A stretch of 63,836 nt of DNA, the filler included, from Dimorphilus gyrociliatus (lineage: Eukaryota > Animalia > Annelida), in the NCBI GenBank assembly GCA_904063045.1. It is 4 parts of 4 records of this genome, joined end to end, with 100 filler letters (N's around TTAATTAATTAA, not from the genome) between each part and the next. Parts side by side here need not be neighbours in the genome. Positions count along the whole stretch, not along the records: positions 43,325 to 54,839 come from CAJFCJ010000234.1; 3 more parts are not named here. One strand, 5' to 3'. Positions 6,010 through 54,839 of the stretch are shown piece by piece. Position 1 is the stretch's first letter, and every line of letters begins with the position of its first letter. The notes beneath the pieces are model-generated. The model was not told where the DNA came from. It was given only the letters and a program-made list of their open reading frames with translations, and did no database searches. The position numbers were made by a program, and so were the translations under genes.

Positions 6010-9000
6010 AATTGTATTGGCAAATTGTGATTTGTCAAATGATTATCTATTTGGTTGTCATTTTAAACATATTTCTTATGGATACTATTTTACAGAATTA
6101 GCTTGTGAAGTTAATAAAAATTTTCAAGGTTTATTGCTTATGAACAATTCAATTAAAATCTAATTTCACCTATTTTTTAGAATATACTGTCAGATTGAGT
6201 TCATCAACATTTTACTATTACAATACAAAATCAATAAAGACTTTGAGCGAAATTTCAGGATATCTTCAAATTTTCATATATAATGAGTGGAGGAATATTT
6301 TAATTTTTGGAATGAAACATTTCATTCCAAAACTAATTTGTAAATATTTTGGGTTTCAAAATGGATATTTAGATCTTTTAAACAAATTGAGATCATTTAA
6401 TCTACAGTTGATCTCTTCAGTTGATATTAATTGTAATTTAACAAGTCAACAATTGAAATTTTGCAGTTTTACACCATCATCAAAATTATATTTGTTAGTT
6501 ATAAACATTCCTTTCTTCTTTTAGCATTTAAATTGTAAATATTCTTGTTTAAAAAATAGAAGAGAGAATTTAAAAAACACAATTTCATCACAAGCATTTA
6601 CAATATACTGCTCAAATACAAAAACAATTGGTTGGTATTTCCATATATCTGTATTGAAATTTCTCTTCATCTCTCTTTCTCTCTCCCTCATTCTAGATTG
6701 TCAATATGAAAATTCAATTAGAATCTCTTATCTTTGTTATAAATTTTTCAAAGATTCTGAAATATTATCACCTTTCAAAATGAAGGAAAAATGCTCAAAA
6801 AAAAATTTAACACTCATAGATGAATCCTACAAGAGATACGTTGACGTTTTTGCCACGCTCAACTTTTTCTATAAAAACTTATTACTGAATGAAAAATCTC
6901 AAGGATATAATAAAAATGTATTCTTCACTGTAAACAATAAGCTTAATTCAACAGTAAAAAATATAAAAACAATTAAAACACCATCGAATCTTCCATTCAC
7001 TTATATATCATCTGTCCAAGAAAGATCTAGAATATGTTTTGTATAAGCACAATTCAAATCTTTAATACATAATGTTGTTTTTTTTTGTTTATAAATATCT
7101 TATAGCAACTAGATTAGTATACTATCACGATTTTAATTACGAAGAGGCATCTTTAAATCCGTATGATCAATGTTACGTAGTTTCAAAAACACATATAAAT
7201 GATTTTAAAATTCAAAATATTTATGTTCGAAAGAGAGCAGTATCTTGTGTATTACCTTCAACAAAGTATTATATTTGCCAAAATATTCTTGGTATTGAAT
7301 TTTTGTTCTTTTGATCTTTGATTTTAAATAACTTTTTATCCATTTTTAAACAGCTTTAAAGAGAAATATCTCAAAATCTATTGGTGAAACTTATCATAAT
7401 TTTTCAAAAAATAGTTTCCGGTGCAAATTTTCTGATATTCTTATAAGTCACACTCAAATATGTGATGGTATTCAAGATTGCTCATTTGGTGAAGATGAGG
7501 AAAACTGTTTAAATCAATTTCAATTTACTTGTTTAAACAATTTAAAACAGAAAATTCCATTTCAATTTGTTTGTAATTTTAGAAAAGATTGTTCTGATGG
7601 ATCCGATGAAAAATTTTGTTCTGAAACTACTCAATCTTCAAATTCAAACTTGTATAAGATTAAAAATATTCAAAAAATATCTCAACGGGTATATTTTATA
7701 CATTTTGAAAATTTCACTTCCATTTCAGATTTAAATGTGACAAATGGAGATATTTGAATAGGAAGCAAGTTTGTGATAATCAATACAACTGCTTTGATAA
7801 AACAGATGAAGATTGTATTAATTATTGGAATGATGATAATAAAAAATTTGAAAGTAATCTAATTAATTATACTTTTTTTTTTTACATTTGACCTAATTAG
7901 GACATGATTGTTTACTTTTTTCAAGAATGTAGGTCAACTACTCAAATCCAATGTCTAGATCATTGTTTACCCCTTCATATGAATTGTGATAATTTTGTAC
8001 ATTGTGAAGACAGATCGGATGAAATCTCTTACTGTAGCCAAATTGTTGGAAAGGCATCAATGTGAATTAATATTTAAACTATTTAAAAAATAATTGTTAA
8101 CTTTTCAAAAATAATCCAAAAACATTTTAGAACAGGATTCTCAGAGAAATTTACTCTGGTGACAAAAGAGACGAAATGTAATATTATATATGAGTCAACT
8201 GGATATTTAAGGACTAAAGTTCATTTTCCAAATTTTCCGTATGGAATATTCAACTGCCATAAAAAATCTTGTCCAGGAGCATTTCTATGCATAGAACACC
8301 AATTTTGTATACAAATTGAGAATGTTTGCGATGGTACAAATCATTGTTGGAGTAATGAAGACGAACAAAATTGTGGTATTCTGTTTTGCAGTTCTTTTTG
8401 CAGTCGTTGATATTTTTTTCAAATCTTAGAGACTTTTCAGCCAAAAGGATATTTTAAATGTCAAATGGAGGAGAAATTTCTAAATATTAGCAGAGTTTGT
8501 AATGGAACAATTGATTGCGAGTATGGAAATGATGAAATATTCTGTCCAAGGAATATTACTACTTGTCCAGAATACTGAAATTGCTTTCCAGTTTATCTAT
8601 GGAAATGTTCAAATGTGTTTGATTCTAATAAATTATCATTCGTGAATGAAAATCAAGCAAATATGATAAAATACTTGGCTATTTCAAATTTAATAAATAT
8701 AAAAGATCCTTTATACTCCAATCAACTGACCTATTTATCTATAATTGATAGTAGCCTATTAGACTGGTCCTCCAATATCAATATTTACTTTCCAAATTTA
8801 GTATTTTTAATTTTGAAAAAGAATGGAATAAGACAATTCTATTTAACAAAACTGAATGGAATAGGATATCTTCTCCAATATCTTGATATTTCACAAAATC
8901 CAATAGAAGACATGGTATTTGGTGTGAATGTAAATATGTTAATCTATCTGGATATTTCATTTACAAATTTGAAATCATTGCAAAATCTACATTTTAAATT

Positions 9001-43324: not shown

Positions 43325-44350
43325 TAAGAACATATTTGATAAAGTTTCATAAAGGTATTTAAAGGGCATTCCGGATAATCGAGCTGAGCATTTTGAATAA
43401 ACTTGCTCAACTCATCACTGATGAGTTTTTTTGTGTTTTTTTTGTGGCTGATACATTGTACTTTGTAGGAAAATCTTGTATTGAAAGACTTTCTGGTAGC
43501 CTGGTCGCAGGTTGTAAACTTGAAGTTTGTTTCACGCTAGTTTCTTCCACTTTAATATTCATTTGTGCAAAATTTTCAAACAAACTCGAGTTCTTTTGAT
43601 ATAAGTGAAGTAAGATAATTCTTGAATTGGTTAGATCTTTATCTAAATTTATCCAAAATCTTGGATCTAACAAGACTAACAACCTGAACAAATTGCTTTC
43701 AAAGATATGTGAACATCTATCTTTGATTTTATCTGTTAAATTCCTTGCATAATCATTTGTTTTCGGGAAAATGAAAAATTTTCGAGCATGTGCATATAAA
43801 AAACGTAAAATTCATTGATCAAAAAAGTTTCTCTTTGCAGAAGAACGTTGAAGTCGCAACAAATCACAATGCTTGTGTGATTTTGCCGATTTCTTGTCAT
43901 TCTTTCTGTAACACACTCAATTTATGATCTTCTAAGGATTTATTTCTATTTTTTTCTAATGTGAGTGTCAAAGATCTTCTGATGGAGACTGATACATTAG
44001 AAAGAGTATTTGGAACTATATTCTCACTTATAAATCTTTTTCATGTACTTTTTGGTAGATTCTCATCATGTCTGTAAAATTTGAAAGATAGTATTTTTCG
44101 TGTATGTTTACTAAGTGAGATCGATGGGAGTTCAAATGATATCCTCCATTGAGAATATATGTGCATTTTTCTTTTTCACTTTGTGACAATATGCATTTGA
44201 AATCTTGATTGTGTTGTGAATAGCATGAAAGAACACTCTTTTTTCTAGTGAGTGATCTATTACGTTTTCACCACCTAGAAGCTCTTTCGATTTTGTCATT
44301 CCTATTTGAAGGGAAAAAAATTTCAAAAATTCTGGGAAATCACTATAATA

Positions 44351-45360
44351 CAGTTGGATCTCGATTTGTGTGGCCTGGGACTTTGTGACTCTGTTTTATG
44401 CACTGAGATCAAAGAGATTTTCAAAAAAATAAAGGCCAAATCAGCTCCTTTAAAATTTTTACATTTTAAAATTATATTGATCAAGCCCTCATACTTCAAA
44501 ATGTCGAAAAAGTCCCAGAAAAAATCTCTCAAAAGCATGAAGTCAAGAAATGTGATAACTCTCAAGCAAAAACAAGAAATATTGAATTTACATCTCAAAG
44601 GCCATAAAAATCATCAAATAATGCAAATTTTATCACTTGGAGAATCAACAATAGGTGGTATCATAAAAAAACAAAGATCCTATTTTGGAAGCAGTTGCAA
44701 ACGCGAAAACAATATTGGTGATTTCGAAAATAAAACACACTTCTTTGCAAAAGACTGAGGAAATCTTGAAAAATTAGCTTTTGGATTGTGTTGATAAAAA
44801 TATAATGATCAATAAACCTATCATACAGGCGAAAGCAATCAGTTTTCGAAAAAGTAACCGAATCAGATGGTGAAGACTCAAGAAAGATCGAATTTGTCGC
44901 AAGCAATGGTTGGTTTGAGCTTTTCAAAAAGAGATACGATTTACACCAAATTGTCATTCAAGGTGAATGAGCAGACACAGATTCACAAGCGGCATATAAT
45001 TTTTCAAAATGGCTTCAAGATTTTATAAAAAACAATGAAATTTCAGAGGAGCTCATCTTTAATGTCAATGAATCCGGGCTTTTTTATAAGGCTGTGCCAA
45101 AAACAAGCTACGTTGTCAAAACTTAAGAGCAAATCAAAGGTCATTAAAAAAACAAAGATCTAATAACATTTTTGCCTGGCAGCAATGCAACAGGATCTTG
45201 CAAATTTTAAGCCATTGGTTATCTGTAAATCCAAAAGACCTCTCTGTTTCTGAAGCAACAACATAGAAGATCTCGAATTCATTTATGATAGGAATGATTC
45301 CAGCTGGATGAAAAAGGATAATTTTGAAACTGATTCCAGTCTGATTTCATTCCGGCTGTC
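44351..45360 (+). mobile_element. Tigger/pogo-family transposase remnant
   Basis: TA-CAGTTGGATCTCG left end; HTH_psq-like RNVITLKQKQEIL from ATG 44501; CENP-B HTH EFVASNGWFELFKKRY; IFNVNESGLFY (DETG-like); SNATG. Many frameshifts; right TIR not found. Confidence 0.85.
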
Positions 45361-46079
45361 GAAAATTTCTGCAAATCAAAAAATTTACAAAACCAGAACC
45401 CTAAGCCCAAAAATATTCGGCCAGTAAAACAAACAAATTTGCCTTAGAATCTTCCAAAAGCATTTTCAACTTTCATGAATGCTATTGCAAATAATTATAG
45501 ATTTTCGTTACTGATAAGATTGAGTTGCGTTGAAACTGTTGCTTGATTTCTGGTAACCCTGACTAAATTTGAATCACCAACAACATAGTACTTGGAATCA
45601 GATAATTGTTCCATTAACCTGTCAAATGTAGAACATCTGAGAATAAAACTGTCATGTGAGGCGACTTTTGCCTATTTCAGGGCAAATTCTGTTCTGGGTG
45701 ACTTCTGTCCTGGGCAACTTCAATCGTATTCATTTTTTGTGATTATTCAGGGTAAACTTTAATCATATAAGAAAAAAATTTTATTATTAAAGAACCCCGT
45801 ACAATAAAACTTTCAGCATTTTTTTATATATAAGATATGCTATAATCTGTCTGTCTGATAAAATGGTGAGCTGTGCTTAAATTCTTAAGACTTACATATA
45901 TTGTTTAATTTTAACTCTTTGACGATAAAAGGAATCCTATAGGTTTCTTTCCTAGAGAGCACTCTATGGTTAGGCTGAACAAAATTTGGGCTTTGTAAAA
46001 CAATTGCTATATATGAACTTTTTACAGAGAAACAATCTCAGAATTATTAAATTAATTGTAGCACATCTGGTTGTCTGAG

Positions 46080-46620
46080 AATATTTTTCATTTTGTTGTA
46101 AAACATCAGAGAATAAATGCCAAAAATGCCAAAGTTCAATGCATTATTGACCAATTACAGGTGCAAAAATGTTCACTTTGTTAGATGTCCAAAAAGGCTT
46201 TTTCCAAATCAAGGTACAGGAAAAAGATAGACATAAAATAGCATTTTTTGTAAATGGGCAGAAATAGGAATTTAGGTGTACACCTATGAGATTCAAAAAT
46301 AGTGCTCAGTCTTTTGAAAGCATTTTGAATCCAGAGATATATGAGTATATTGTACATGGGGTTCAAGTTTTGCAAATGATGTCATAATATATGTTTACAG
46401 AAATACAATATGATGAATCAAGCAAAAAAAGTACTCAAAATTCTAAGAAAAAAAATCTAAAAGTTGTTTTTGAAGAAATGAAATTTTCAAATAAATTAAT
46501 AGTTTTCCTAAATCAAATTATCGATAGAAAGCATGCTAAGGTGCCAAAAAGGAAAATACAACACAGATTGAAATATATTTTTTTGTGAAGCAAATTGTGT
46601 TCTTGGTTAAAATTTTTTAC
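46080..46620 (+). mobile_element. Gypsy-type reverse transcriptase remnant
   Basis: LLDVQKGFFQIKVQEKDRHKIAF...EF...PMRFKNSAQSF and FANDVIIY (degenerate YxDD), with stops. Confidence 0.75.
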
Positions 46621-47284
46621 AATAAGATTATTTCATGTATCTTGAGAATTGATTTCTCTGTTAAACACTCAGCTTTTAAATTGTAAATTATATTTAGAAT
46701 TCTTTAGAGCTGTAATATTCTGACACAAACTAGTATTTTGACTTTTTTACAAATGCTAGCAATGTTGGGATGGGTGTGATTTAAATGCAAAATAAGAAAA
46801 TGGAAACATAAAACGTAGTTCTTTTTAAATAACTTTAATAGTTTAAAATCTTTTAAACTTTCTTGCTATATTGCTTGGTGTTACATAAAAAGTAGGTCAC
46901 TTGAGCTCAATACTTTTTCAATACTACCTATGTGTGAGGAGTACTGGTTGATAAATATATTTTGTGCATGGTTATACTAAAATACTGCTGAATATCTTTT
47001 CTTTTTTAACAGAAACAATTATTTTCCTTGGTTTGTATCAATATCATTTCAGATGTAAAATATAGAAATATATTTAGAAATTGTTTTAATGGAAAATAAT
47101 GGATTTTAAATGATAAACAACTAAAAAAATAACCGTTTTTGCTAATTTGAATACTTATTTTGTTTGGTATACCTACAGCAGACAACTTCTCAACATTTTC
47201 GAATTATTAAAGTCTGAATACCAACTGAATCTAAATTATGGAGTAGGTATAAATATTATTTGATCCAAATTGAATATCTAGCTC

Positions 47285-48622
47285 ATGTTTCATAGATATG
47301 ACCTATCTGGAAGACCATCTGAATGTAAGAGTGGAGGCTGTCAAGAAAATGATAAAGATTTTCCATTTGCTTGCATTGCTAAAGGACAAAAAGTTGAAGA
47401 TATCTTAGAACATCTAAACATTTCTTCAAGTGAAACACATATTGTGAATGTGGAAAAGATTACAAGTAATAACAAAGTGTGTTTTAATGAAAGTGAAATA
47501 AAAAGCATTGATGGCGCAGGAAAAAAATATCTTTTGGTAATTAGAATCAGAAAAAATCATTCATGTAGTTGGAAGAATGCAGCTGTTGCTCTCCAAATTA
47601 ATGAAGCATTGAAACTAGAACAGGTTAACAAGCTGTCTGAAAAAATTATATCAGAGATTCCTAATCTAACTTTGCAAGAAAGATCTAATGAGTGCAAATG
47701 TAGCCGAAAGAAAATGAACACTTCCTTATCATTGACACTGGGTTGTACTCGACATAAGACTTCACCTTACTGCAAATACAGTAGATCAAAAAAAATTGAA
47801 AAATTCAAAGGAATCAATAAAGGTAAAGTATTCAGGCTTTTTTTGTATATTATTATATATAATATATTCCTTTTCAAAAACAGCAACTGCAAGACAAATT
47901 GTTGATATCTGTGATAAAACTGGTCATAAATTGTTGAAACATTGTCCACAAATCTATGACATTATGTTCAAAAGTAACTCCTGCAGAATTGGAAAAGTCA
48001 ACAAATGCTTTGGCATGGTCACATTAATTTCAGATGTTATTTGTCACAGTCACACAGATAAAAACAATGAGAGTGGATCAATAACAGCATTAGTAGGACT
48101 GAAACAAAGAAAAAGATATTGTGAACAGTTTCATATGCTTAAAGATTATAAGAAGATAATGGTTGAACAAGAAGAAGATGATCTTCCCATTGGATTTCTG
48201 ACTCCGCCAGGTAGTATTACATTTGAAATGTCTCACAGAGAGGAGCATGGAACAACTTTTGTTCCACATCAAAATGCCAGAGATCCAGACAGGCTAATAT
48301 TGGCTTACACAAATTTTTATCATTTCCTGACCATGGTAAGCAAGAGAGATTGCTACATAATCTAATCACAGTTGATAAAGAAAAGTGAAATGCCGCTGAG
48401 AAAGAAAAAAAAGTAGACAGTCTGAGAGAATTGGAAGCAACCTTTGTTCCCAAACATCTATTGAAAGGAAAAAGAAAACGAAAATTTATAAAAAGAACTA
48501 GACTAGAAAAGGATAATAGAAATGCAAAAAGAAGAGCTTTGGCAATGGAGAAGAACTGCAAAGATACAGGAAACAGCTCTGATAGCAGTTGCATTGAAGA
48601 AGAGTTATCCCAGTCACCCTAA
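47285..48622 (+). CDS. TET: Compact TET-family Fe(II)/2OG methylcytosine dioxygenase (Cys-rich plus DSBH only); exons 47285-47822 and 47884-48365; probable 1-nt frameshift near 48314-48325; tail ORF to 48622
   Basis: Colinear with the animal TET catalytic domain: RIRKNHSC (GHTC), ECKC (TCAC), LTLGC...YCKYSRSK (FSFGC...GCKFARSK), SCRIG (ECRLG), ICHSHTDKNN (FCAHAHRDLHN), EQFHMLKDYK (EQLHVLPLYK), GSITFEMSHREEHGTT (GSILIECAKRELHATT), DPDRL (HPTRI). A 61 bp GT-AG intron joins the two ORFs in frame. Confidence 0.9.
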
Positions 48623-49739
48623 CTTTATCAATTATCTGCTTATCCATTTTATACTCTGGTTATATGTAGATTAGCTATGTGTTGTTTTTTATTAGTACAG
48701 GTTACTCCGTAACATTTTATATAAGAAGCAAGTAATATGATTGTTGAAATTGGATGTAGGACAAAAGTATATAAACTTTTCTGGCTTTTTTCACAATAAT
48801 AAACCTATATGTAGATTGTCTATATATTTTCCTCCTCCTTTTGAAATGTCTTCTCTTTTCAAAAAAAATGACTGAAAACTAATCCCAGTTAGATGTTGAT
48901 CAAGTTGTTTATTGGAAATTATTAACCAAATAGAAATCAAAACAAAAGATATCTAGAGATAGCACATTTCTCTTACAAGTTACATTTTGATATTTATATA
49001 TATATTTCGGTTTTTCAAAAAAAATTTCTATTATCAAAATAAAAATTTTCATAATTTGATATATATATGGTGTAATTTTTTTAATTTTCAATATTTTTAA
49101 GACTTGAACATTTTATTGACAAGAGAAATATTTACTCTATTAAATACAAACCAAAAATACTATAAATTCTTAAACTTTTTATTAAAACTAATTCAACAAT
49201 AAAACTAAATCCAAATATTTTTTTTCAGTGTTCATTTTATTTGCATAGTTGCTTATTAATATTTTTTACAAAATAAATGTTAAAAACAATAATTATTCAC
49301 AGAAAACAGATTTTGTTCAAAAGTTAAATCTAAAGTTGTATGTTGTATAGATGAAATTAGAGATCATATCATAGAAAAACCCTGTGCTTTTTATCTTTTC
49401 TTCCCTTCTAATATTTTCCTTTTTCTAAATGAAAACTTAAAATATAATTGAACAAGTTTCACTCAAGTGGGCTGCTTTGATCCCAATGAAAAACACCAGA
49501 GCTAACCTGAACTGATTATTTTTCCATATTTTTTCCTTTCATCCCTTTCCCTCATTATTTTTAATCTGAAAAGTTCATTTCATTTCTTAAATCTCAACAA
49601 AAATTCAACTTTACTAATAGTCATTTTTTTTCCTTTTTTTTTCTCTTAAAAATAATGTAAAAATAGAAGAAGTTAGTAATTTTCTTTAACGCAAGGAAAG
49701 GCATTAGCTGTTTATTTTTAATTTATTTATAAATCCTAG

Positions 49740-51230
49740 ATTGTACCACTGGACTATACTGTATTAACAGTTTTTGCTAATGATAAAGATTCCAATAAAA
49801 ATGGTGAAATTACGTGCAATATTGAACCTGCATTAAATGTTAGGAATGACGGAAAAGATCACTTTAAGATTTTATCTTCTGGAGAATTTAAATAGCCAAA
49901 GCATTGGATTATGAAGCTTTAGCAATTACTGGCGATGGTAGTTTCTAACTAAATGTCTCTGCATCTGATAATTCGGATACTTCGAAATTTCGACTTTAAC
50001 AACAAGTTGACTTTGAACAACTACCCGATGCCATAAGTTTTAGAGTTCAAACCAGGGAGTTAAATGTTCTAAATGGAAAAACGACCCTTGAATCATTCAG
50101 CATAAAAGTTGTTGATGTTAATGATAACAAACCAAGATTTTCTACATCAGATAATCTTGTATTCATTAAAGAAATAGAGAATCCTGAGCCAACAGTAGTT
50201 TATACTGTTAGCACAAGTGATGCCGATTCTGGAGACTTTGGAAATGTTACTTATTCTATAACATCTGGAGATAATGGGAAATTCGAAATCAATAAATTAA
50301 TCATTGTTTTTTTATAATTCTAATCAATTTTTTCCCCCATTTTTTTTTAATAGACCTCAACAACAACCCTAGTTGTTACCGTGACTGATATTAATGATAA
50401 TTCACCTGAGCTAGGAGAGACTGTGAAAGAGCTGTTTGTTGATGAGGGTAAGAGTAATATTATTGTTGATGGTAGAATTTGGGGTAATGACAAAGATGAA
50501 GGAGCAAATGGACAAGTTCGTTTCAGAATTGAAAATAACAAACACTTCTGTATTGATGAAAACACAGGAAATATGTACACAAAAACGGCATTAGATTATG
50601 AAACTAAAAAAATCCATAAGGTCCCTGTCATCCTCATTGATAGGGGAACACCACCTGTAGTTTATATAATTATATAACCATTAATGTCAATGACCTTGAA
50701 GATGAAATACCAATATTTGATAAGACTAGTTATCAAGCCACTGTAAATGAAAATGATGATAATGCATATGTTGCTACTGTTTTGGTTTGTATTTATATTT
50801 TTTTACCAAGTTTTCTCAATTATTTATAATAATTTCACTTAACTAAAGGCAAGGGACGCCCATGCAAATAAATCGGTAACTTATAAATTCAGCTGTAATG
50901 AAAACAACCTTTTCAAGATAAATCAAACAAATGGAGAAATTCGAACAGTTGTCAACCTAGATTATGAATTATCATGTCGGCATACAGTTATAGTTTCAAC
51001 TGAGGAAGCTGCAAATAACATAAATTATCTATATTCACTATATAGGGGTTCTATTGACATAGAAGCATTTTTGCAATTATTTAACAAGAAAATTGTTGTA
51101 TATGGTAAACGGTTTCATAAATACATAATTGTGGAAATGACAAATATGCATGATGCCAACATTAACCAGATCCACTGCTTAATGTACAAAGATTACCATT
51201 ATAATCCCATTGTAAATCAAGTTACAATAG
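49740..51230 (+). pseudogene. Cadherin-repeat (protocadherin/FAT-like) pseudogene fragment
   Basis: Calcium-binding motifs DKD...NG, VVDVNDNKPRF, DADSG, TDINDNSP, LDYE, DRGTPP. Multiple frameshifts and stops. Confidence 0.85.
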
Positions 51231-51591
51231 GTAAGTTTAATAAAATAGTTGGTTTTAATCTGTACTATCTTTATTTAATTTCTACAGATTCTGTTCAGGG
51301 TTAGATAACAGCCTTACAACTAACCTAAACTATTATAGTCAACAACATCAACTTTACAAATTTCTGTTAATGTTCCTTATGTATGTAAACAAGTTGTGGA
51401 TTGTTAGGGAAAAATCAGTTCATAGTATTAATCCTAACAGTTTGTTAGATGCCATTTTGCTCAGTATTAATAATATATTTGTTTCTATAATCTGAAAAAC
51501 ATTGATTACAATAAACATTTTCTTTATAAAACATGGGTTAGTCAAAAACCATTGTATCAAGCACAAACTTCGATGCTTAATATCTCTAATT

Positions 51592-51682
51592 CCAAGCCCA
51601 CAATTTTTTTTAATTTTTGATATGTGTTTTAGTAATATGTTATAAGGCTATATTCAAAAAATAAAAAAAATCGTGGGCTTGG
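51592..51682. repeat. Foldback: ~30 bp inverted arms, probably part of a non-autonomous DNA transposon
   Basis: CCAAGCCCACAATTTTTTTTAATTTTTGA (51592-51620) pairs with TCAAAAAATAAAAAAAATCGTGGGCTTGG (51654-51682). Confidence 0.7.
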
Positions 51683-52434
51683 GTTTTGAGCTAGAGGTCA
51701 AAACGTAGAAAAAACATCATTTTTTCCTATTTTACACCTCAAACATATAGTTTGCTTCAAAATTTCGAAATTTTGAATCCAATTTATTACTGTACACCTT
51801 CAAATTGTTCAATTTAAAAAAAAAAAATTCAAAAAAACAGAAAAAAATTTTTAATCGTTAATTTTCTTTCTCCAAAATCTCAGCCTACAGATGCCAGCAG
51901 ATGAAAAGACTTTAGTAAATTATTAGTTAGGCATATATATACAAGTTGGCATACTCAACTAAAAAAGAACCCCCCTGTAAACCCAAACCAAACCCTAACC
52001 CTAAAGGAGGAATACCTCCAAAATATTGTGAGGATTTTTTAATTGGTGAATTGTTACAGTTGCTAAATACAGGTTCTCTTCACCCTTGTGGAGAATTTGT
52101 AAGTGATTTTGTTGGAGATACAGTTACAGCTTAGGCTGGGGAATTGCTACTTAAGATAGCAACTCCTCATTAGCCACACCAACCCTTAGCCAAATCTTGG
52201 TTACAAGTGTGTTAGCACTTTTGGGATTACCAGTCTGTACTGATTGTGCTAATCCCTAACCCCAAGACCTAACCCAAGAGCTCAGGAGAGCTCTAAGAGC
52301 TCAAGTGAGCTTCAACAGTTCTTACAACTCAGTATTCAACACCTCTGACAGTACTGAACTATACCACTATATATACTGGTGCAGAACCTCAGTCATCCTC
52401 TTCACTTGACAGTGTTAACAAGTACTTCCTAAAG

Positions 52435-53604
52435 ATGCCAGCTTCTAGATGCATGACAAATAAGTGCAAACTTTGCCCAGCCCTAATACAGGGAGGGTCC
52501 TGGAGCTCCAGAGATGGCCGTATTACTAAAAAGATTGAGGGAAACCTCAATTGTAATTCAGACCACATGTTTTTCCTTGCTGATTGTAAAAAGTGTAATT
52601 GGGCTATGGCTAGTTTCACCATATCTCCACTACATAGAATGTATGGATTTTCATTGAAAAAATCAAAAACAAGCAAAGACCATGTTGGAGCTCTGGCTCT
52701 TCATATGAGGACCTGCAACCCTACCAACATAAGAATCCTTCCTATCATGGTCCAACCAGAGACAGAACACTTCCATGTCAAGAAAGTGAGTACATTGTTG
52801 CAATTACTATATAATGCTGACTGGGTAGAAATAGCTAAGTTTAAGAAAAGTAACCCAGACATTAGAGGGACAAACCCAAATGAGTTTCCATGCAATATTA
52901 GACCTACAATAATTAGTATCCAAGGGGTAACTCTTGAGCTCTCAGAAAATTTTAATATCCCTCTACCTAAGGAGTTAGCTCATTAGCAGTATGAGAACTC
53001 AGTTCTCTGTAGTAATAAGCACTCTTATGTGGGTCTGAGTAGACCCACCTTAAATAACCTAAGAAAAGATAACATAGATCTTAGGAACAAAGTGATTGAG
53101 TTGGAAAACACAATCAAAGCAAGCTCCAGTAAGCTGGAGGAAGCTAATAGTAAATTAGAGGAAGCTAATAAGAAAAACAAGAAGCTCCTACAGGAACTAG
53201 AGAAAAAGAACTCAACTGAACAAAGAACTTCTAATAGTTATGAATGGGACTGGTCAAAAGCTCTTCCTATTAATGGAAGAGGCTTTATCAAATTCTTCTC
53301 ACTACCAGAACAGGATACTGTGGAAAAATTTAAAGTAGAGCCAGTAATCATTAATCTTGAGGATCTAGGTTCCAACTCAACACCAGGAGCTCAACAAACT
53401 CCAGACAAAGAAATGGTCCCTACCAAGGAACAGACTGAGGAGGAAGAAGATGATGACAACTATGATGATATGGAAGATGGTGAGTATCAATATGAAAGCA
53501 CTCCAAAAGAAAATAGCAATATTGGAATAGAACAAAGACTCCTGATCAAGAGATCAGGTGATGACTTTGAAGTAATACCTTCCAAGAAACCAAGAAAAAT
53601 GTAG
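52435..53604 (+). pseudogene. Penelope-type Zn/GIY-YIG-derived domain plus coiled coil and acidic tail; one frame interrupted by a single TAG at 52984
   Basis: RC..NKCKLCP...LNCNSD.MFFLADCKKC...SFT..PLHR...ALALHMRTC...ILPI matches the cysteine spacing of the PLE linker/GIY-YIG. ORFs 52435-52986 and 53029-53604 share a frame. Confidence 0.6.
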
Positions 53605-53655
53605 ATAGGTGGCGCTATGAAAGATTGTATTGCATTTAATTGAAAAAAAACAAGA

Positions 53656-54839
53656 CTACAGTTGTAAATTTTTCAGCTGTTTGCTGATAAACTCTCCATA
53701 GTTTTTAATATCAGAATAAACATTTGCACTATTTAATAGGAAAGTCAAGTTTTCAGTTTCAATGTCAATTCCAATGCTGAGCATTTTACTGTCTGATATA
53801 TTTTCCTGCTGTGAAGAAAATATTTTTGCGAAATATATCAAAGTAGAAGCTATATTCTTACATATTTAAATGTTTGGATATGAAAATTTCCAAATGAAAT
53901 AAAACACTGATGCAAATTGGACAATAGCTTAATTGTTTTTATACATATTTGAAAAATATCATTTAAAGTCTTTTTTTCAATTGGAAAGATTTGATTGGAC
54001 TTGTAAAATTCTCTCTGACTTCCATCAAAGAACCAACCATTCTTAAATGACCCGTTCAAGAAGTTAGAAGCTGTAAAAAGACGAGAATTTTTTCTTGTAC
54101 CTTTTTCAATTGAAAGTGGAATATTTTTACCTTTAAGTAAAAGATCCAATTGCAGAGAGGCTGTCTGCCTTTTACTGAGAAGAGAAAAAAGGGAAAATGA
54201 GAAGAGTTTTAAAAATTGTAAAAGAATTTTTAATATATTTACAATTTAAGCCAAGCTTTTCTTTCTCTAATGATTTTAACTGTAAAAGTTGATTGAACAA
54301 ATGGATTTATTATTGCATTTATTGGTAAGAAAATGATAAAAATAGCCATATAATTATCATAATTGATAGGTGTCTTATTCATCGAAGCCAATATACCTGT
54401 TTTTAAATTTATTGAATCAAGTAACTCAATGTTGAATTATACTTCTAAAATAATAGGCTATTACTAAATATTGAAATTGGTATCCAAGAAATGAAATTTG
54501 ATGATAAGATAATCAATGTCTTCAATATCATACGCATAAATCTTTTCTTTCTGACTTGGCCAGAGACGATTTCACTCATTTTCTGTATTTCTTGAAAAAT
54601 TTTACAATATAAAAGAAGAATTATAAAACAGATTGCAATTGGTATGATTGAAAACATAATCAATGAATAATACCATCCTTCACTTCTATCAGCTGTCAAG
54701 TGCAATGAAAAACACAGTGAATATTTCGAATAGAAATCCTATAGTTGTTTGTTTGGTTGTTTGTTTATTTTAATCAAATTTTTAATAGGCCTATATAAAA
54801 TAAAAAAATACCTTGTAGAAAATTATTGGTAGAATGGAC
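53656..54839 (-). CDS. GRL101-like receptor copy (TM4-TM7) spliced to a degenerate kinase-like C-terminal domain; 5' part lost at the gap
   Basis: EGWYYS, SNFISWIPI, PINAIINPF; a 68 bp intron (54242-54175) joins the tail in frame to ORF 54149-53850; a further exon encodes VYSDIKNYG. Confidence 0.75.

Follow-up and report, generated by a model that had tools for sequence, protein, structure and literature searches.

A compact TET-family gene of Dimorphilus gyrociliatus with a frameshifted C-terminus and insert-less relatives in environmental assemblies

Results

The TET locus and its neighbourhood

The window comprises the whole stretch of DNA that was presented (63,836 nt, filler included), and the piece analysed here is the 11.5 kb part of it derived from Dimorphilus gyrociliatus record CAJFCJ010000234.1 (positions 43,325-54,839; all coordinates count along the window). 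A TET gene composed of two exons lies on the + strand of this piece, accompanied by repeats, a probable transposase remnant and parts of other genes (Table 1). Joining exons 1 and 2 over the 61-nt intron yields a product of 339 aa in which the strings HSC, CKC, LGC, YCK, SCR, HSHTD, EEHGTT, DRL, KIMVEQEEDDL and RLILAYTNF are found, and the ORFs, intron and motifs described in the initial annotation were all recovered in place. The start codon at 47285 is preceded, one codon upstream, by an in-frame TAG (47279-81). The piece has a GC content of 31 % and a CpG observed/expected ratio of 0.31 (GpC, 1.07), with only four CpGs inside the TET gene itself; the CpG-depleted neighbourhood noted previously was borne out, and the region also contains repeats.

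Contigs from public sequencing runs were compared with window positions 45000-50500. X1 is a deep DNA run (~134x), and X2 and X3 are transcript-like, X2 being a 2017 run of another study and organism label. Two repeated segments displayed elevated X1 depth. At the one located 3' of the TET gene, contigs of X3 and X2 pass abruptly into dissimilar sequence at exactly 48469 and 48678, and the loose contig ends beyond these points have no match in the piece. The ORF with a helix-turn-helix (HTH) match at 44306-44758 is, judging by that domain, probably a pogo/Tigger-like transposase remnant. Downstream, the cadherin exons align to a highly covered X2 contig of 26,955 nt, but identity is only 93-97 % and the matched blocks are separated by 626 and 395 additional letters; the exons appear to represent a paralogue or a degraded copy of a giant cadherin gene with high expression. 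No Pfam family scored above threshold in the two ORFs within 52435-53604, and a word-index search with the ORF at 52435-52983 returned no homologue. Rfam searches found nothing in the piece. Two further X1 contigs were observed at the TET gene. The first spans 47230-47568 (340 nt, depth 11 versus ~180 for the main contig), displays 25 differences (93 % alike) and may represent a diverged allele, a strain or a partial paralogue of the gene's 5' end. The second matches only a ~90-nt AT-rich stretch (47848-47938; intron end and exon 2 start) with unlike sequence on both sides, and may mark a dispersed short repeat or have matched low-complexity sequence by chance.

Table 1. Features of the analysed piece, in window coordinates
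Feature	Position	Strand	Remarks
ORF with CENP-B N-terminal/pogo-type HTH	44306-44758	+	22.8 bits; cut-off 21.2
High-copy repeat	45552-45735		X1 depth ~1077 versus ~135 alongside; also covered in X2
Possible core promoter TATAAATA	47248-47255	+	37 nt 5' of the ATG; weak, AT-rich context; read from sequence
Exon 1	47285-47822	+	ATG and Cys-rich domain; aa 1-179 and first base of codon 180
Intron	47823-47883	+	61 nt; GT..AG; phase 1
Exon 2	47884-48365	+	DSBH core: HxD (HTD), QxHxLxxY, EEHGTT, Arg (DRL); stop TAA 48363-65
Frame break	48305-48308	+	Net 7 nt lost after the Ala320 codon, ahead of the conserved His codon
Out-of-frame relic of the ancestral C-terminus	48305-48388	+	L-HKFLSFPDHG, 16-aa tail and TGA (48386-88)
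3' repeated segment	48469-48678	+	X1 depth ~303 versus ~134 alongside; outside TET coding sequence
Cadherin-domain exons	49740-50500	+	Pfam Cadherin 41.8 bits for 50381-50674
Two ORFs, 183 and 191 aa	52435-53604	+	Locally GC-richer (0.39); second coiled-coil, acidic
Rhodopsin-family GPCR fragments	54448-54705, 54242-54391	-	7tm_1 24 bits, below cut-off of 30.5; run towards the piece edge

Splicing and transcription of the TET gene

The splice junction predicted in the initial annotation was found in contigs of X2 and X3, which skip exactly the 61-nt intron (shorter-side matches of 110 and 49, with zero and one mismatch, respectively), and was absent from the contigs of the deep DNA run X1 at the TET gene. 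In the nearby cadherin exons, too, contigs of both runs show GT..AG joints. Given these joints and their coverage pattern, the two runs behave like transcriptome assemblies, a reading taken from the contigs themselves and not from run records. X2 covers ~47296-48678 and leaves 46472-47207 and 48680-49599 uncovered. Transcript-like depth over the TET gene was 3-5, compared with ~116 for the cadherin-like X2 contig. On this evidence, the compact TET gene is transcribed at a low level and spliced as predicted.

A tblastn search with 58 relatives, including THAP-bearing and N-terminally extended proteins, produced matches only within 47402-48329 of the piece and revealed no upstream exons. Neither Pfam nor tblastn detected a CXXC domain or other N-terminal region upstream within the 11.5-kb piece, in keeping with the lack of N-terminal regions remarked upon at the outset.

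Homology to animal TET dioxygenases

Homology searches confirmed the predicted product as an animal-type TET dioxygenase, in which a Cys-rich domain sits directly N-terminal to, and colinear with, the double-stranded beta-helix (DSBH). Pfam Tet_JBP (PF12851) matched exon 2 alone at E 3e-8 (33.5 bits, just under the gathering score of 34.9 with a half-domain query), and atlas searches gave Tet_JBP again and nothing further. When searched against the PDB with phmmer, exons 1 and 2 each matched only human TET2, and did so colinearly: exon 1 aa 78-176 aligned to positions 79-185 of the TET2 chain, and exon 2 presented HxD, then the second His, then Arg in the TET2 order. Identity to human TET2 was ~25-30 %. 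Scored individually against the family HMM, exon 1 reached 49 bits (E 2e-17, covering HMM positions 9-182) and exon 2 112 bits. The spliced protein scored 160.7 bits (E 3e-51) against an HMM of 23 compact relatives from which the D. gyrociliatus sequence had been left out. The TET identity first proposed by eye is thus upheld by the TET2 matches and the relatives' HMM. A word-index search with exon 1 over proteins of 113-360 aa returned no match.

The catalytic motifs listed in the initial annotation (Fe ligands, 2-oxoglutarate (2OG) Arg, the Asn of HxDxxN and most Cys) are likewise present. H236-T-D238, H301 and R316 align with columns invariant in relatives and correspond in the alignment to TET2 H1382/D1384, H1881 and R1896, whilst the Asn of HxDxxN is kept as N241, the equivalent of TET2 N1387, which is among the 5mC-contacting residues of TET2 together with Y1902 and H1904 (PMC11804724). 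C137, C139, C154, C163 and C213 are also kept, with altered spacing in the first CxC pair. The gene therefore has the HxD/His triad, 2OG Arg, HxDxxN Asn and QxHxLxxY in common with the human TET2 catalytic domain (PDB 4NM6, 5D9Y, 5DEU), and its catalytic core is of the same family as that of canonical invertebrate TETs. In contrast to human TET2, it is without the N-terminal half and the long C-terminal extension, and its equivalents of H1904 and P-x-H-G are out of frame. Between its DSBH halves, native TET2 accommodates several hundred residues of low-complexity sequence, where the D. gyrociliatus gene has ~25 aa; the absence of the long insert, noted from the sequence at first, is real.

Compact relatives in environmental assemblies

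A HMMER scan with exon 2 over 1.84 billion representatives produced 41 hits, the best at 2e-10, with 34-42 % identity. All 41 are short proteins in which both DSBH halves align as a single stretch. They originate from metagenome, metatranscriptome and Logan contigs, are annotated at most as 'hypothetical protein', and are intronless ORFs on the three contigs that were read. Their own Tet_JBP scores range from 48 to 113 bits. At least 35 clusters of such compact, insert-less, Cys-rich TETs are present in environmental assemblies. The initial annotation had presented the D. gyrociliatus gene as a natural analogue of engineered minimal TET catalytic domains; it is no isolated case, as dozens of intact compact TETs were found elsewhere.

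A profile built from 23 compact proteins and the two D. gyrociliatus exons matched only TET2 in the PDB (E 3e-104), with the match spanning the Cys-rich domain and both DSBH halves. An AlphaFold (AF2) model of relative P0002 (pLDDT 86, pTM 0.84) was likewise structurally closest to TET2 (E 4e-32, TM 0.75). Protist and fungal TET/JBP proteins, represented by Naegleria NgTet1 and fungal CcTet, resemble the D. gyrociliatus gene in being small, in having no long insert and in sharing the same DSBH chemistry. However, their structural match to P0002 was far weaker (TM 0.40-0.46), and they were undetected by the compact-family profile in the PDB at E<=0.01. NgTet1 and CcTet are not known to have the metazoan Cys-rich domain. 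By sequence and fold, the compact class is animal-type, and it is both real and diverse.

The spacing between QxHxLxxY and ExAxxExH (ExSxxExH in the D. gyrociliatus gene) was bimodal. Fifty-one proteins, the D. gyrociliatus gene (25 aa) among them, had spacings of 13-28 aa (mode 21), whereas most long-insert proteins fell at 100-490 aa; three intermediates stood at 43-82 aa. A C-terminal motif, R-x-x-L-V-x-x-H-x-x-L-x-x-x-x-H-G, was present in 49 of the 58 proteins examined (relatives and cluster members), mostly 2-20 aa from the C-terminus. In most relatives it begins R-[IL]-[GA]-L-V and is followed by a short tail after HG. Conservation within this motif was high: 38 of 40 relatives retain the His at +8 from the Arg, and the H and G of HG are retained in 38 and 37 of 41, respectively. 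Relatives P0002, P0004/P0046, P0008, P0009 and P0011 display a common architecture of ~360-480 aa with a short DSBH link (mode 21 aa) and a short post-HG tail. The D. gyrociliatus gene fits this class in its length of 339 aa, its 25-aa link and an ancestral frame that ends 16 aa after HG, the exception being its frameshifted tail. It differs from the compact relatives in possessing one intron, no added domain and a frameshift, and in sharing at most 42 % identity with any of them; in nearly all relatives, unlike in this gene, His(+8) and HG remain in frame.

Phylogenetic analysis of 48 sequences placed the long-insert proteins, which include the canonical TETs, in a short-branched group. The compact proteins were long-branched and did not form one clade, such that at least two changes between the compact and long-insert states are needed. 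In contrast to the canonical TETs, the D. gyrociliatus gene occupies the longest terminal branch of the tree (5 changes per column versus a median of 0.48), which agrees with its original description as a fast-evolving paralogue. It keeps 29 of the 41 columns that are >=80 % conserved in relatives, fewer than all 41 relatives (range 0.76-1.0), with retention at catalytic sites far above overall retention. Membership of a fast-evolving class of insert-less TET paralogues is the best explanation for this gene on comparative grounds.

Some members of the class carry additional domains. An N-terminal THAP domain was observed in the intact relatives P0011 (contig L001) and P0009 (L003), and C-terminal C2H2 fingers in P0001 and P0007; these fusions suggest that the minimal TET core may be targeted to specific sequences. 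Separately, the compact-TET locus of P0046 recurs at >99 % identity in at least four samples (L004-L007). It is bracketed by ~130-nt and 45-nt tandem repeats (L004:3711-4124 and 8494-8587), where the assemblies diverge, and no transposase was found in these flanks.

A frameshift near the 3' end

The in-frame match of the D. gyrociliatus protein to the relatives' HMM, with its own sequence left out, stops at RLILA (HMM position 335), and HMM positions 338-355 instead match another forward frame, LHKFLSFPDHGKQERLLH. There, LHKFLSFPDHG (48308-48337, with PDHG at 48326-48337) reproduces the family motif H-K-x-L-x-x-P-x-H-G. The distance from the Arg codon at 48291 to the His codon at 48308 is 17 nt, where the family spacing from R to H(+8) needs 24. 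A 19-column C-terminal sub-HMM of the relatives, run against the piece's full set of 690 six-frame segments, returned this relic as the sole significant hit (E 5.7e-5, 18.3 bits), and the pattern H-x7-H-G is unique to it within the piece. With XX at the frame break, read-through scored 177.9 bits against the family HMM, up from 160.7 (+17). Beyond HG the ancestral frame continues for 16 aa, as is typical of the compact class.

The encoded protein reads Y-T-N-F-Y-H-F-L-T-M-V... after R-L-I-L-A and proceeds to the stop through an unrelated 19-aa tail; the alternative C-terminal tails at the frame break are YTNFYHFLTMVSK or LHKFLSFPDHGK. At the positions of TET2 Y1902 and H1904 it has T and F, the His being available only in the shifted frame (48308-10), and P-x-H-G is absent from the protein and present out of frame. 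The histidine of HG corresponds to TET2 H1912, presumably a zinc ligand. The initial annotation had read RLILAYTN (versus RISLVFYQH) as an altered base-contacting region that hinted at changed substrate preference. Neither reading is supported, since the stretch arises not from substitution but from a net 7-nt loss, after which the conserved motif follows in another frame.

One X1 contig (47570-48529) and one X2 contig (48137-48342) match the window across the break with no gaps, indicating that the lesion is genuine and present in the transcript. An assembly error in the nearby run of five T residues was ruled out by the same gapless contigs, and the missing 7 nt lie upstream of that run. Two splicing solutions were also considered. 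A donor at 48336 (ATG|GTAAGC), or a tiny intron removing the TGA, cannot bring the His codon at 48308-10 into frame; the X2 contig of 48137-48342 continues 7 nt past this putative donor with no mismatch and is too short to bridge it. The downstream basic ORF at 48431-48622 was rejected as a source of the ancestral tail, as it lies in the repeat, with raised depth and contig breaks at 48469/48678, and the ancestral frame stops at 48386.

Discussion

Our analysis favours, with moderate confidence, an accessory TET paralogue that has recently been disabled, or at least crippled at its C-terminus, and is still transcribed. The locus encodes a compact TET consisting of the Cys-rich domain and the DSBH, with no low-complexity insert, CXXC domain or other N-terminal region, and intact members of the class are expected to work like the TET2 catalytic core, oxidising 5-methylcytosine in DNA in an Fe(II)/2-oxoglutarate-dependent manner. 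A net loss of 7 nt inside the last core beta-strand, just past R-L-I-L-A, has shifted the frame, taking the H1904-equivalent His and the near-invariant P-x-H-G out of the protein and putting the unrelated 19-aa tail in their place. Production and splicing of the mRNA continue, with the paralogue probably disabled, or at best remodelled at its C-terminus, at the protein level. In TET2, H1904 hydrogen-bonds N3 of 5mC, Y1902 stacks on the base, and most H1904 variants suffer a 10-40-fold drop in mC oxidation (PMC11804724). The encoded protein is, on these comparisons, most likely strongly impaired or inactive. Retention at catalytic sites far above the overall level, together with an otherwise open reading frame, suggests that the gene was under selection until recently, and the perfect legibility of the out-of-frame motif argues for a recent origin of the frameshift. 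The main observation running counter to disablement is that the 339-codon ORF is otherwise intact in DNA of 31 % GC, where stops arise easily. A protein that is truncated yet functional, or that has gained a new function, is conceivable given the kept Fe/2OG ligands and HxDxxN Asn, the transcription and the correct splicing.

The latter option can be stated more specifically as a functional compact TET with a remodelled C-terminal strand, in which the new tail completes the beta-helix and loss of the His alters base preference, for example towards thymine. This is possible, although we think it unlikely. The long ORF, the kept HxD, His, Arg and HxDxxN Asn, and the expression and splicing of the gene are all compatible with function; the new tail (YTNFYHF...) is rich in aromatic, strand-compatible residues, and human TET2 H1904Q gains thymine oxidation by about 5-fold (PMC11804724). 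Nevertheless, the change came about by frameshift and not by substitutions, and the legible ancestral motif indicates a young event that has had little time under selection. The near-universal retention of His(+8) and HG in relatives, and the activity lost by most TET2 H1904 variants, likewise speak for impairment.

A longer, ordinary TET gene of which these two exons form only the 3' part, with CXXC or N-terminal exons further upstream or outside the piece, is very unlikely. The piece measures only 11.5 kb and the thin transcript coverage (depth 3-5) leaves the 5' end unmapped, which gives such exons room. However, an in-frame stop stands one codon before the ATG, transcript-like coverage is nil in 46472-47207, and tblastn with 58 relatives matched nothing outside 47402-48329. 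Relatives such as P0013 also start directly at the Cys-rich domain, and the insert of canonical TETs is absent. Highly improbable, too, is a transposon-borne TET that counters silencing of its own element, comparable to the TET/JBP genes linked to fungal KDZ or other transposons; such genes are indeed found on fungal transposons (PMC12730594), and repeats and the pogo-like HTH ORF occur within the same piece. At this locus, however, the gene has no inverted or direct terminal repeats on its two sides, its X1 depth (~134) is that of a single copy, the degenerate pogo-like ORF is 2.5 kb away with no transposase adjacent, and CpG depletion is common to the gene and its surroundings. The transposon link and counter-silencing role entertained in the initial annotation consequently find no evidence here, with neither terminal inverted repeats nor a flanking transposase. 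Lastly, programmed -1 ribosomal frameshifting at A_AAT_TTT (48311-48317) has the X_XXY_YYZ form and the right phase to restore the P-D-H-G tail (-1 frame LSFPDHG...), but is hardly credible, as the heptamer comes after His(+8), which is encoded in the other frame and would stay unrestored, the downstream RNA is without stable structure (z 0.43), and such heptamers are common in AT-rich DNA.

The D. gyrociliatus gene belongs to a class for which we found no description in the searchable literature. A CXXC domain and a large low-complexity insert are features of canonical TET genes (10.1101/2021.11.07.467601). The usual account of non-vertebrate animals is of a single large TET that combines a CXXC domain with a long disordered insert, and tet duplications are reported to be infrequent among animals (PMC8330077). 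A broader proposal, in which mini-TETs form a widespread, fast-evolving and undescribed accessory branch, some aimed by THAP or C2H2 domains, and the D. gyrociliatus copy is a working member with an altered base preference such as thymine, is doubtful in our estimation. The intact compact relatives make better 'natural minimal TETs' than this frameshifted copy. A caution also attaches to its odd base-contact region, which is the scar of a frameshift and not an adaptation, and it is the intact relatives that should be tested.

The locus and its dozens of intact relatives indicate that TET cores of ~340-480 aa without the insert arose repeatedly in nature, given that the tree needs at least two changes between the compact and long-insert states, and that these cores were sometimes fused to sequence-specific DNA-binding domains. 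These findings bear on the role of the TET insert, on the evolution of accessory demethylases in heavily CpG-methylated genomes, and on which small natural TET domains may suit compact epigenome-editing effectors.
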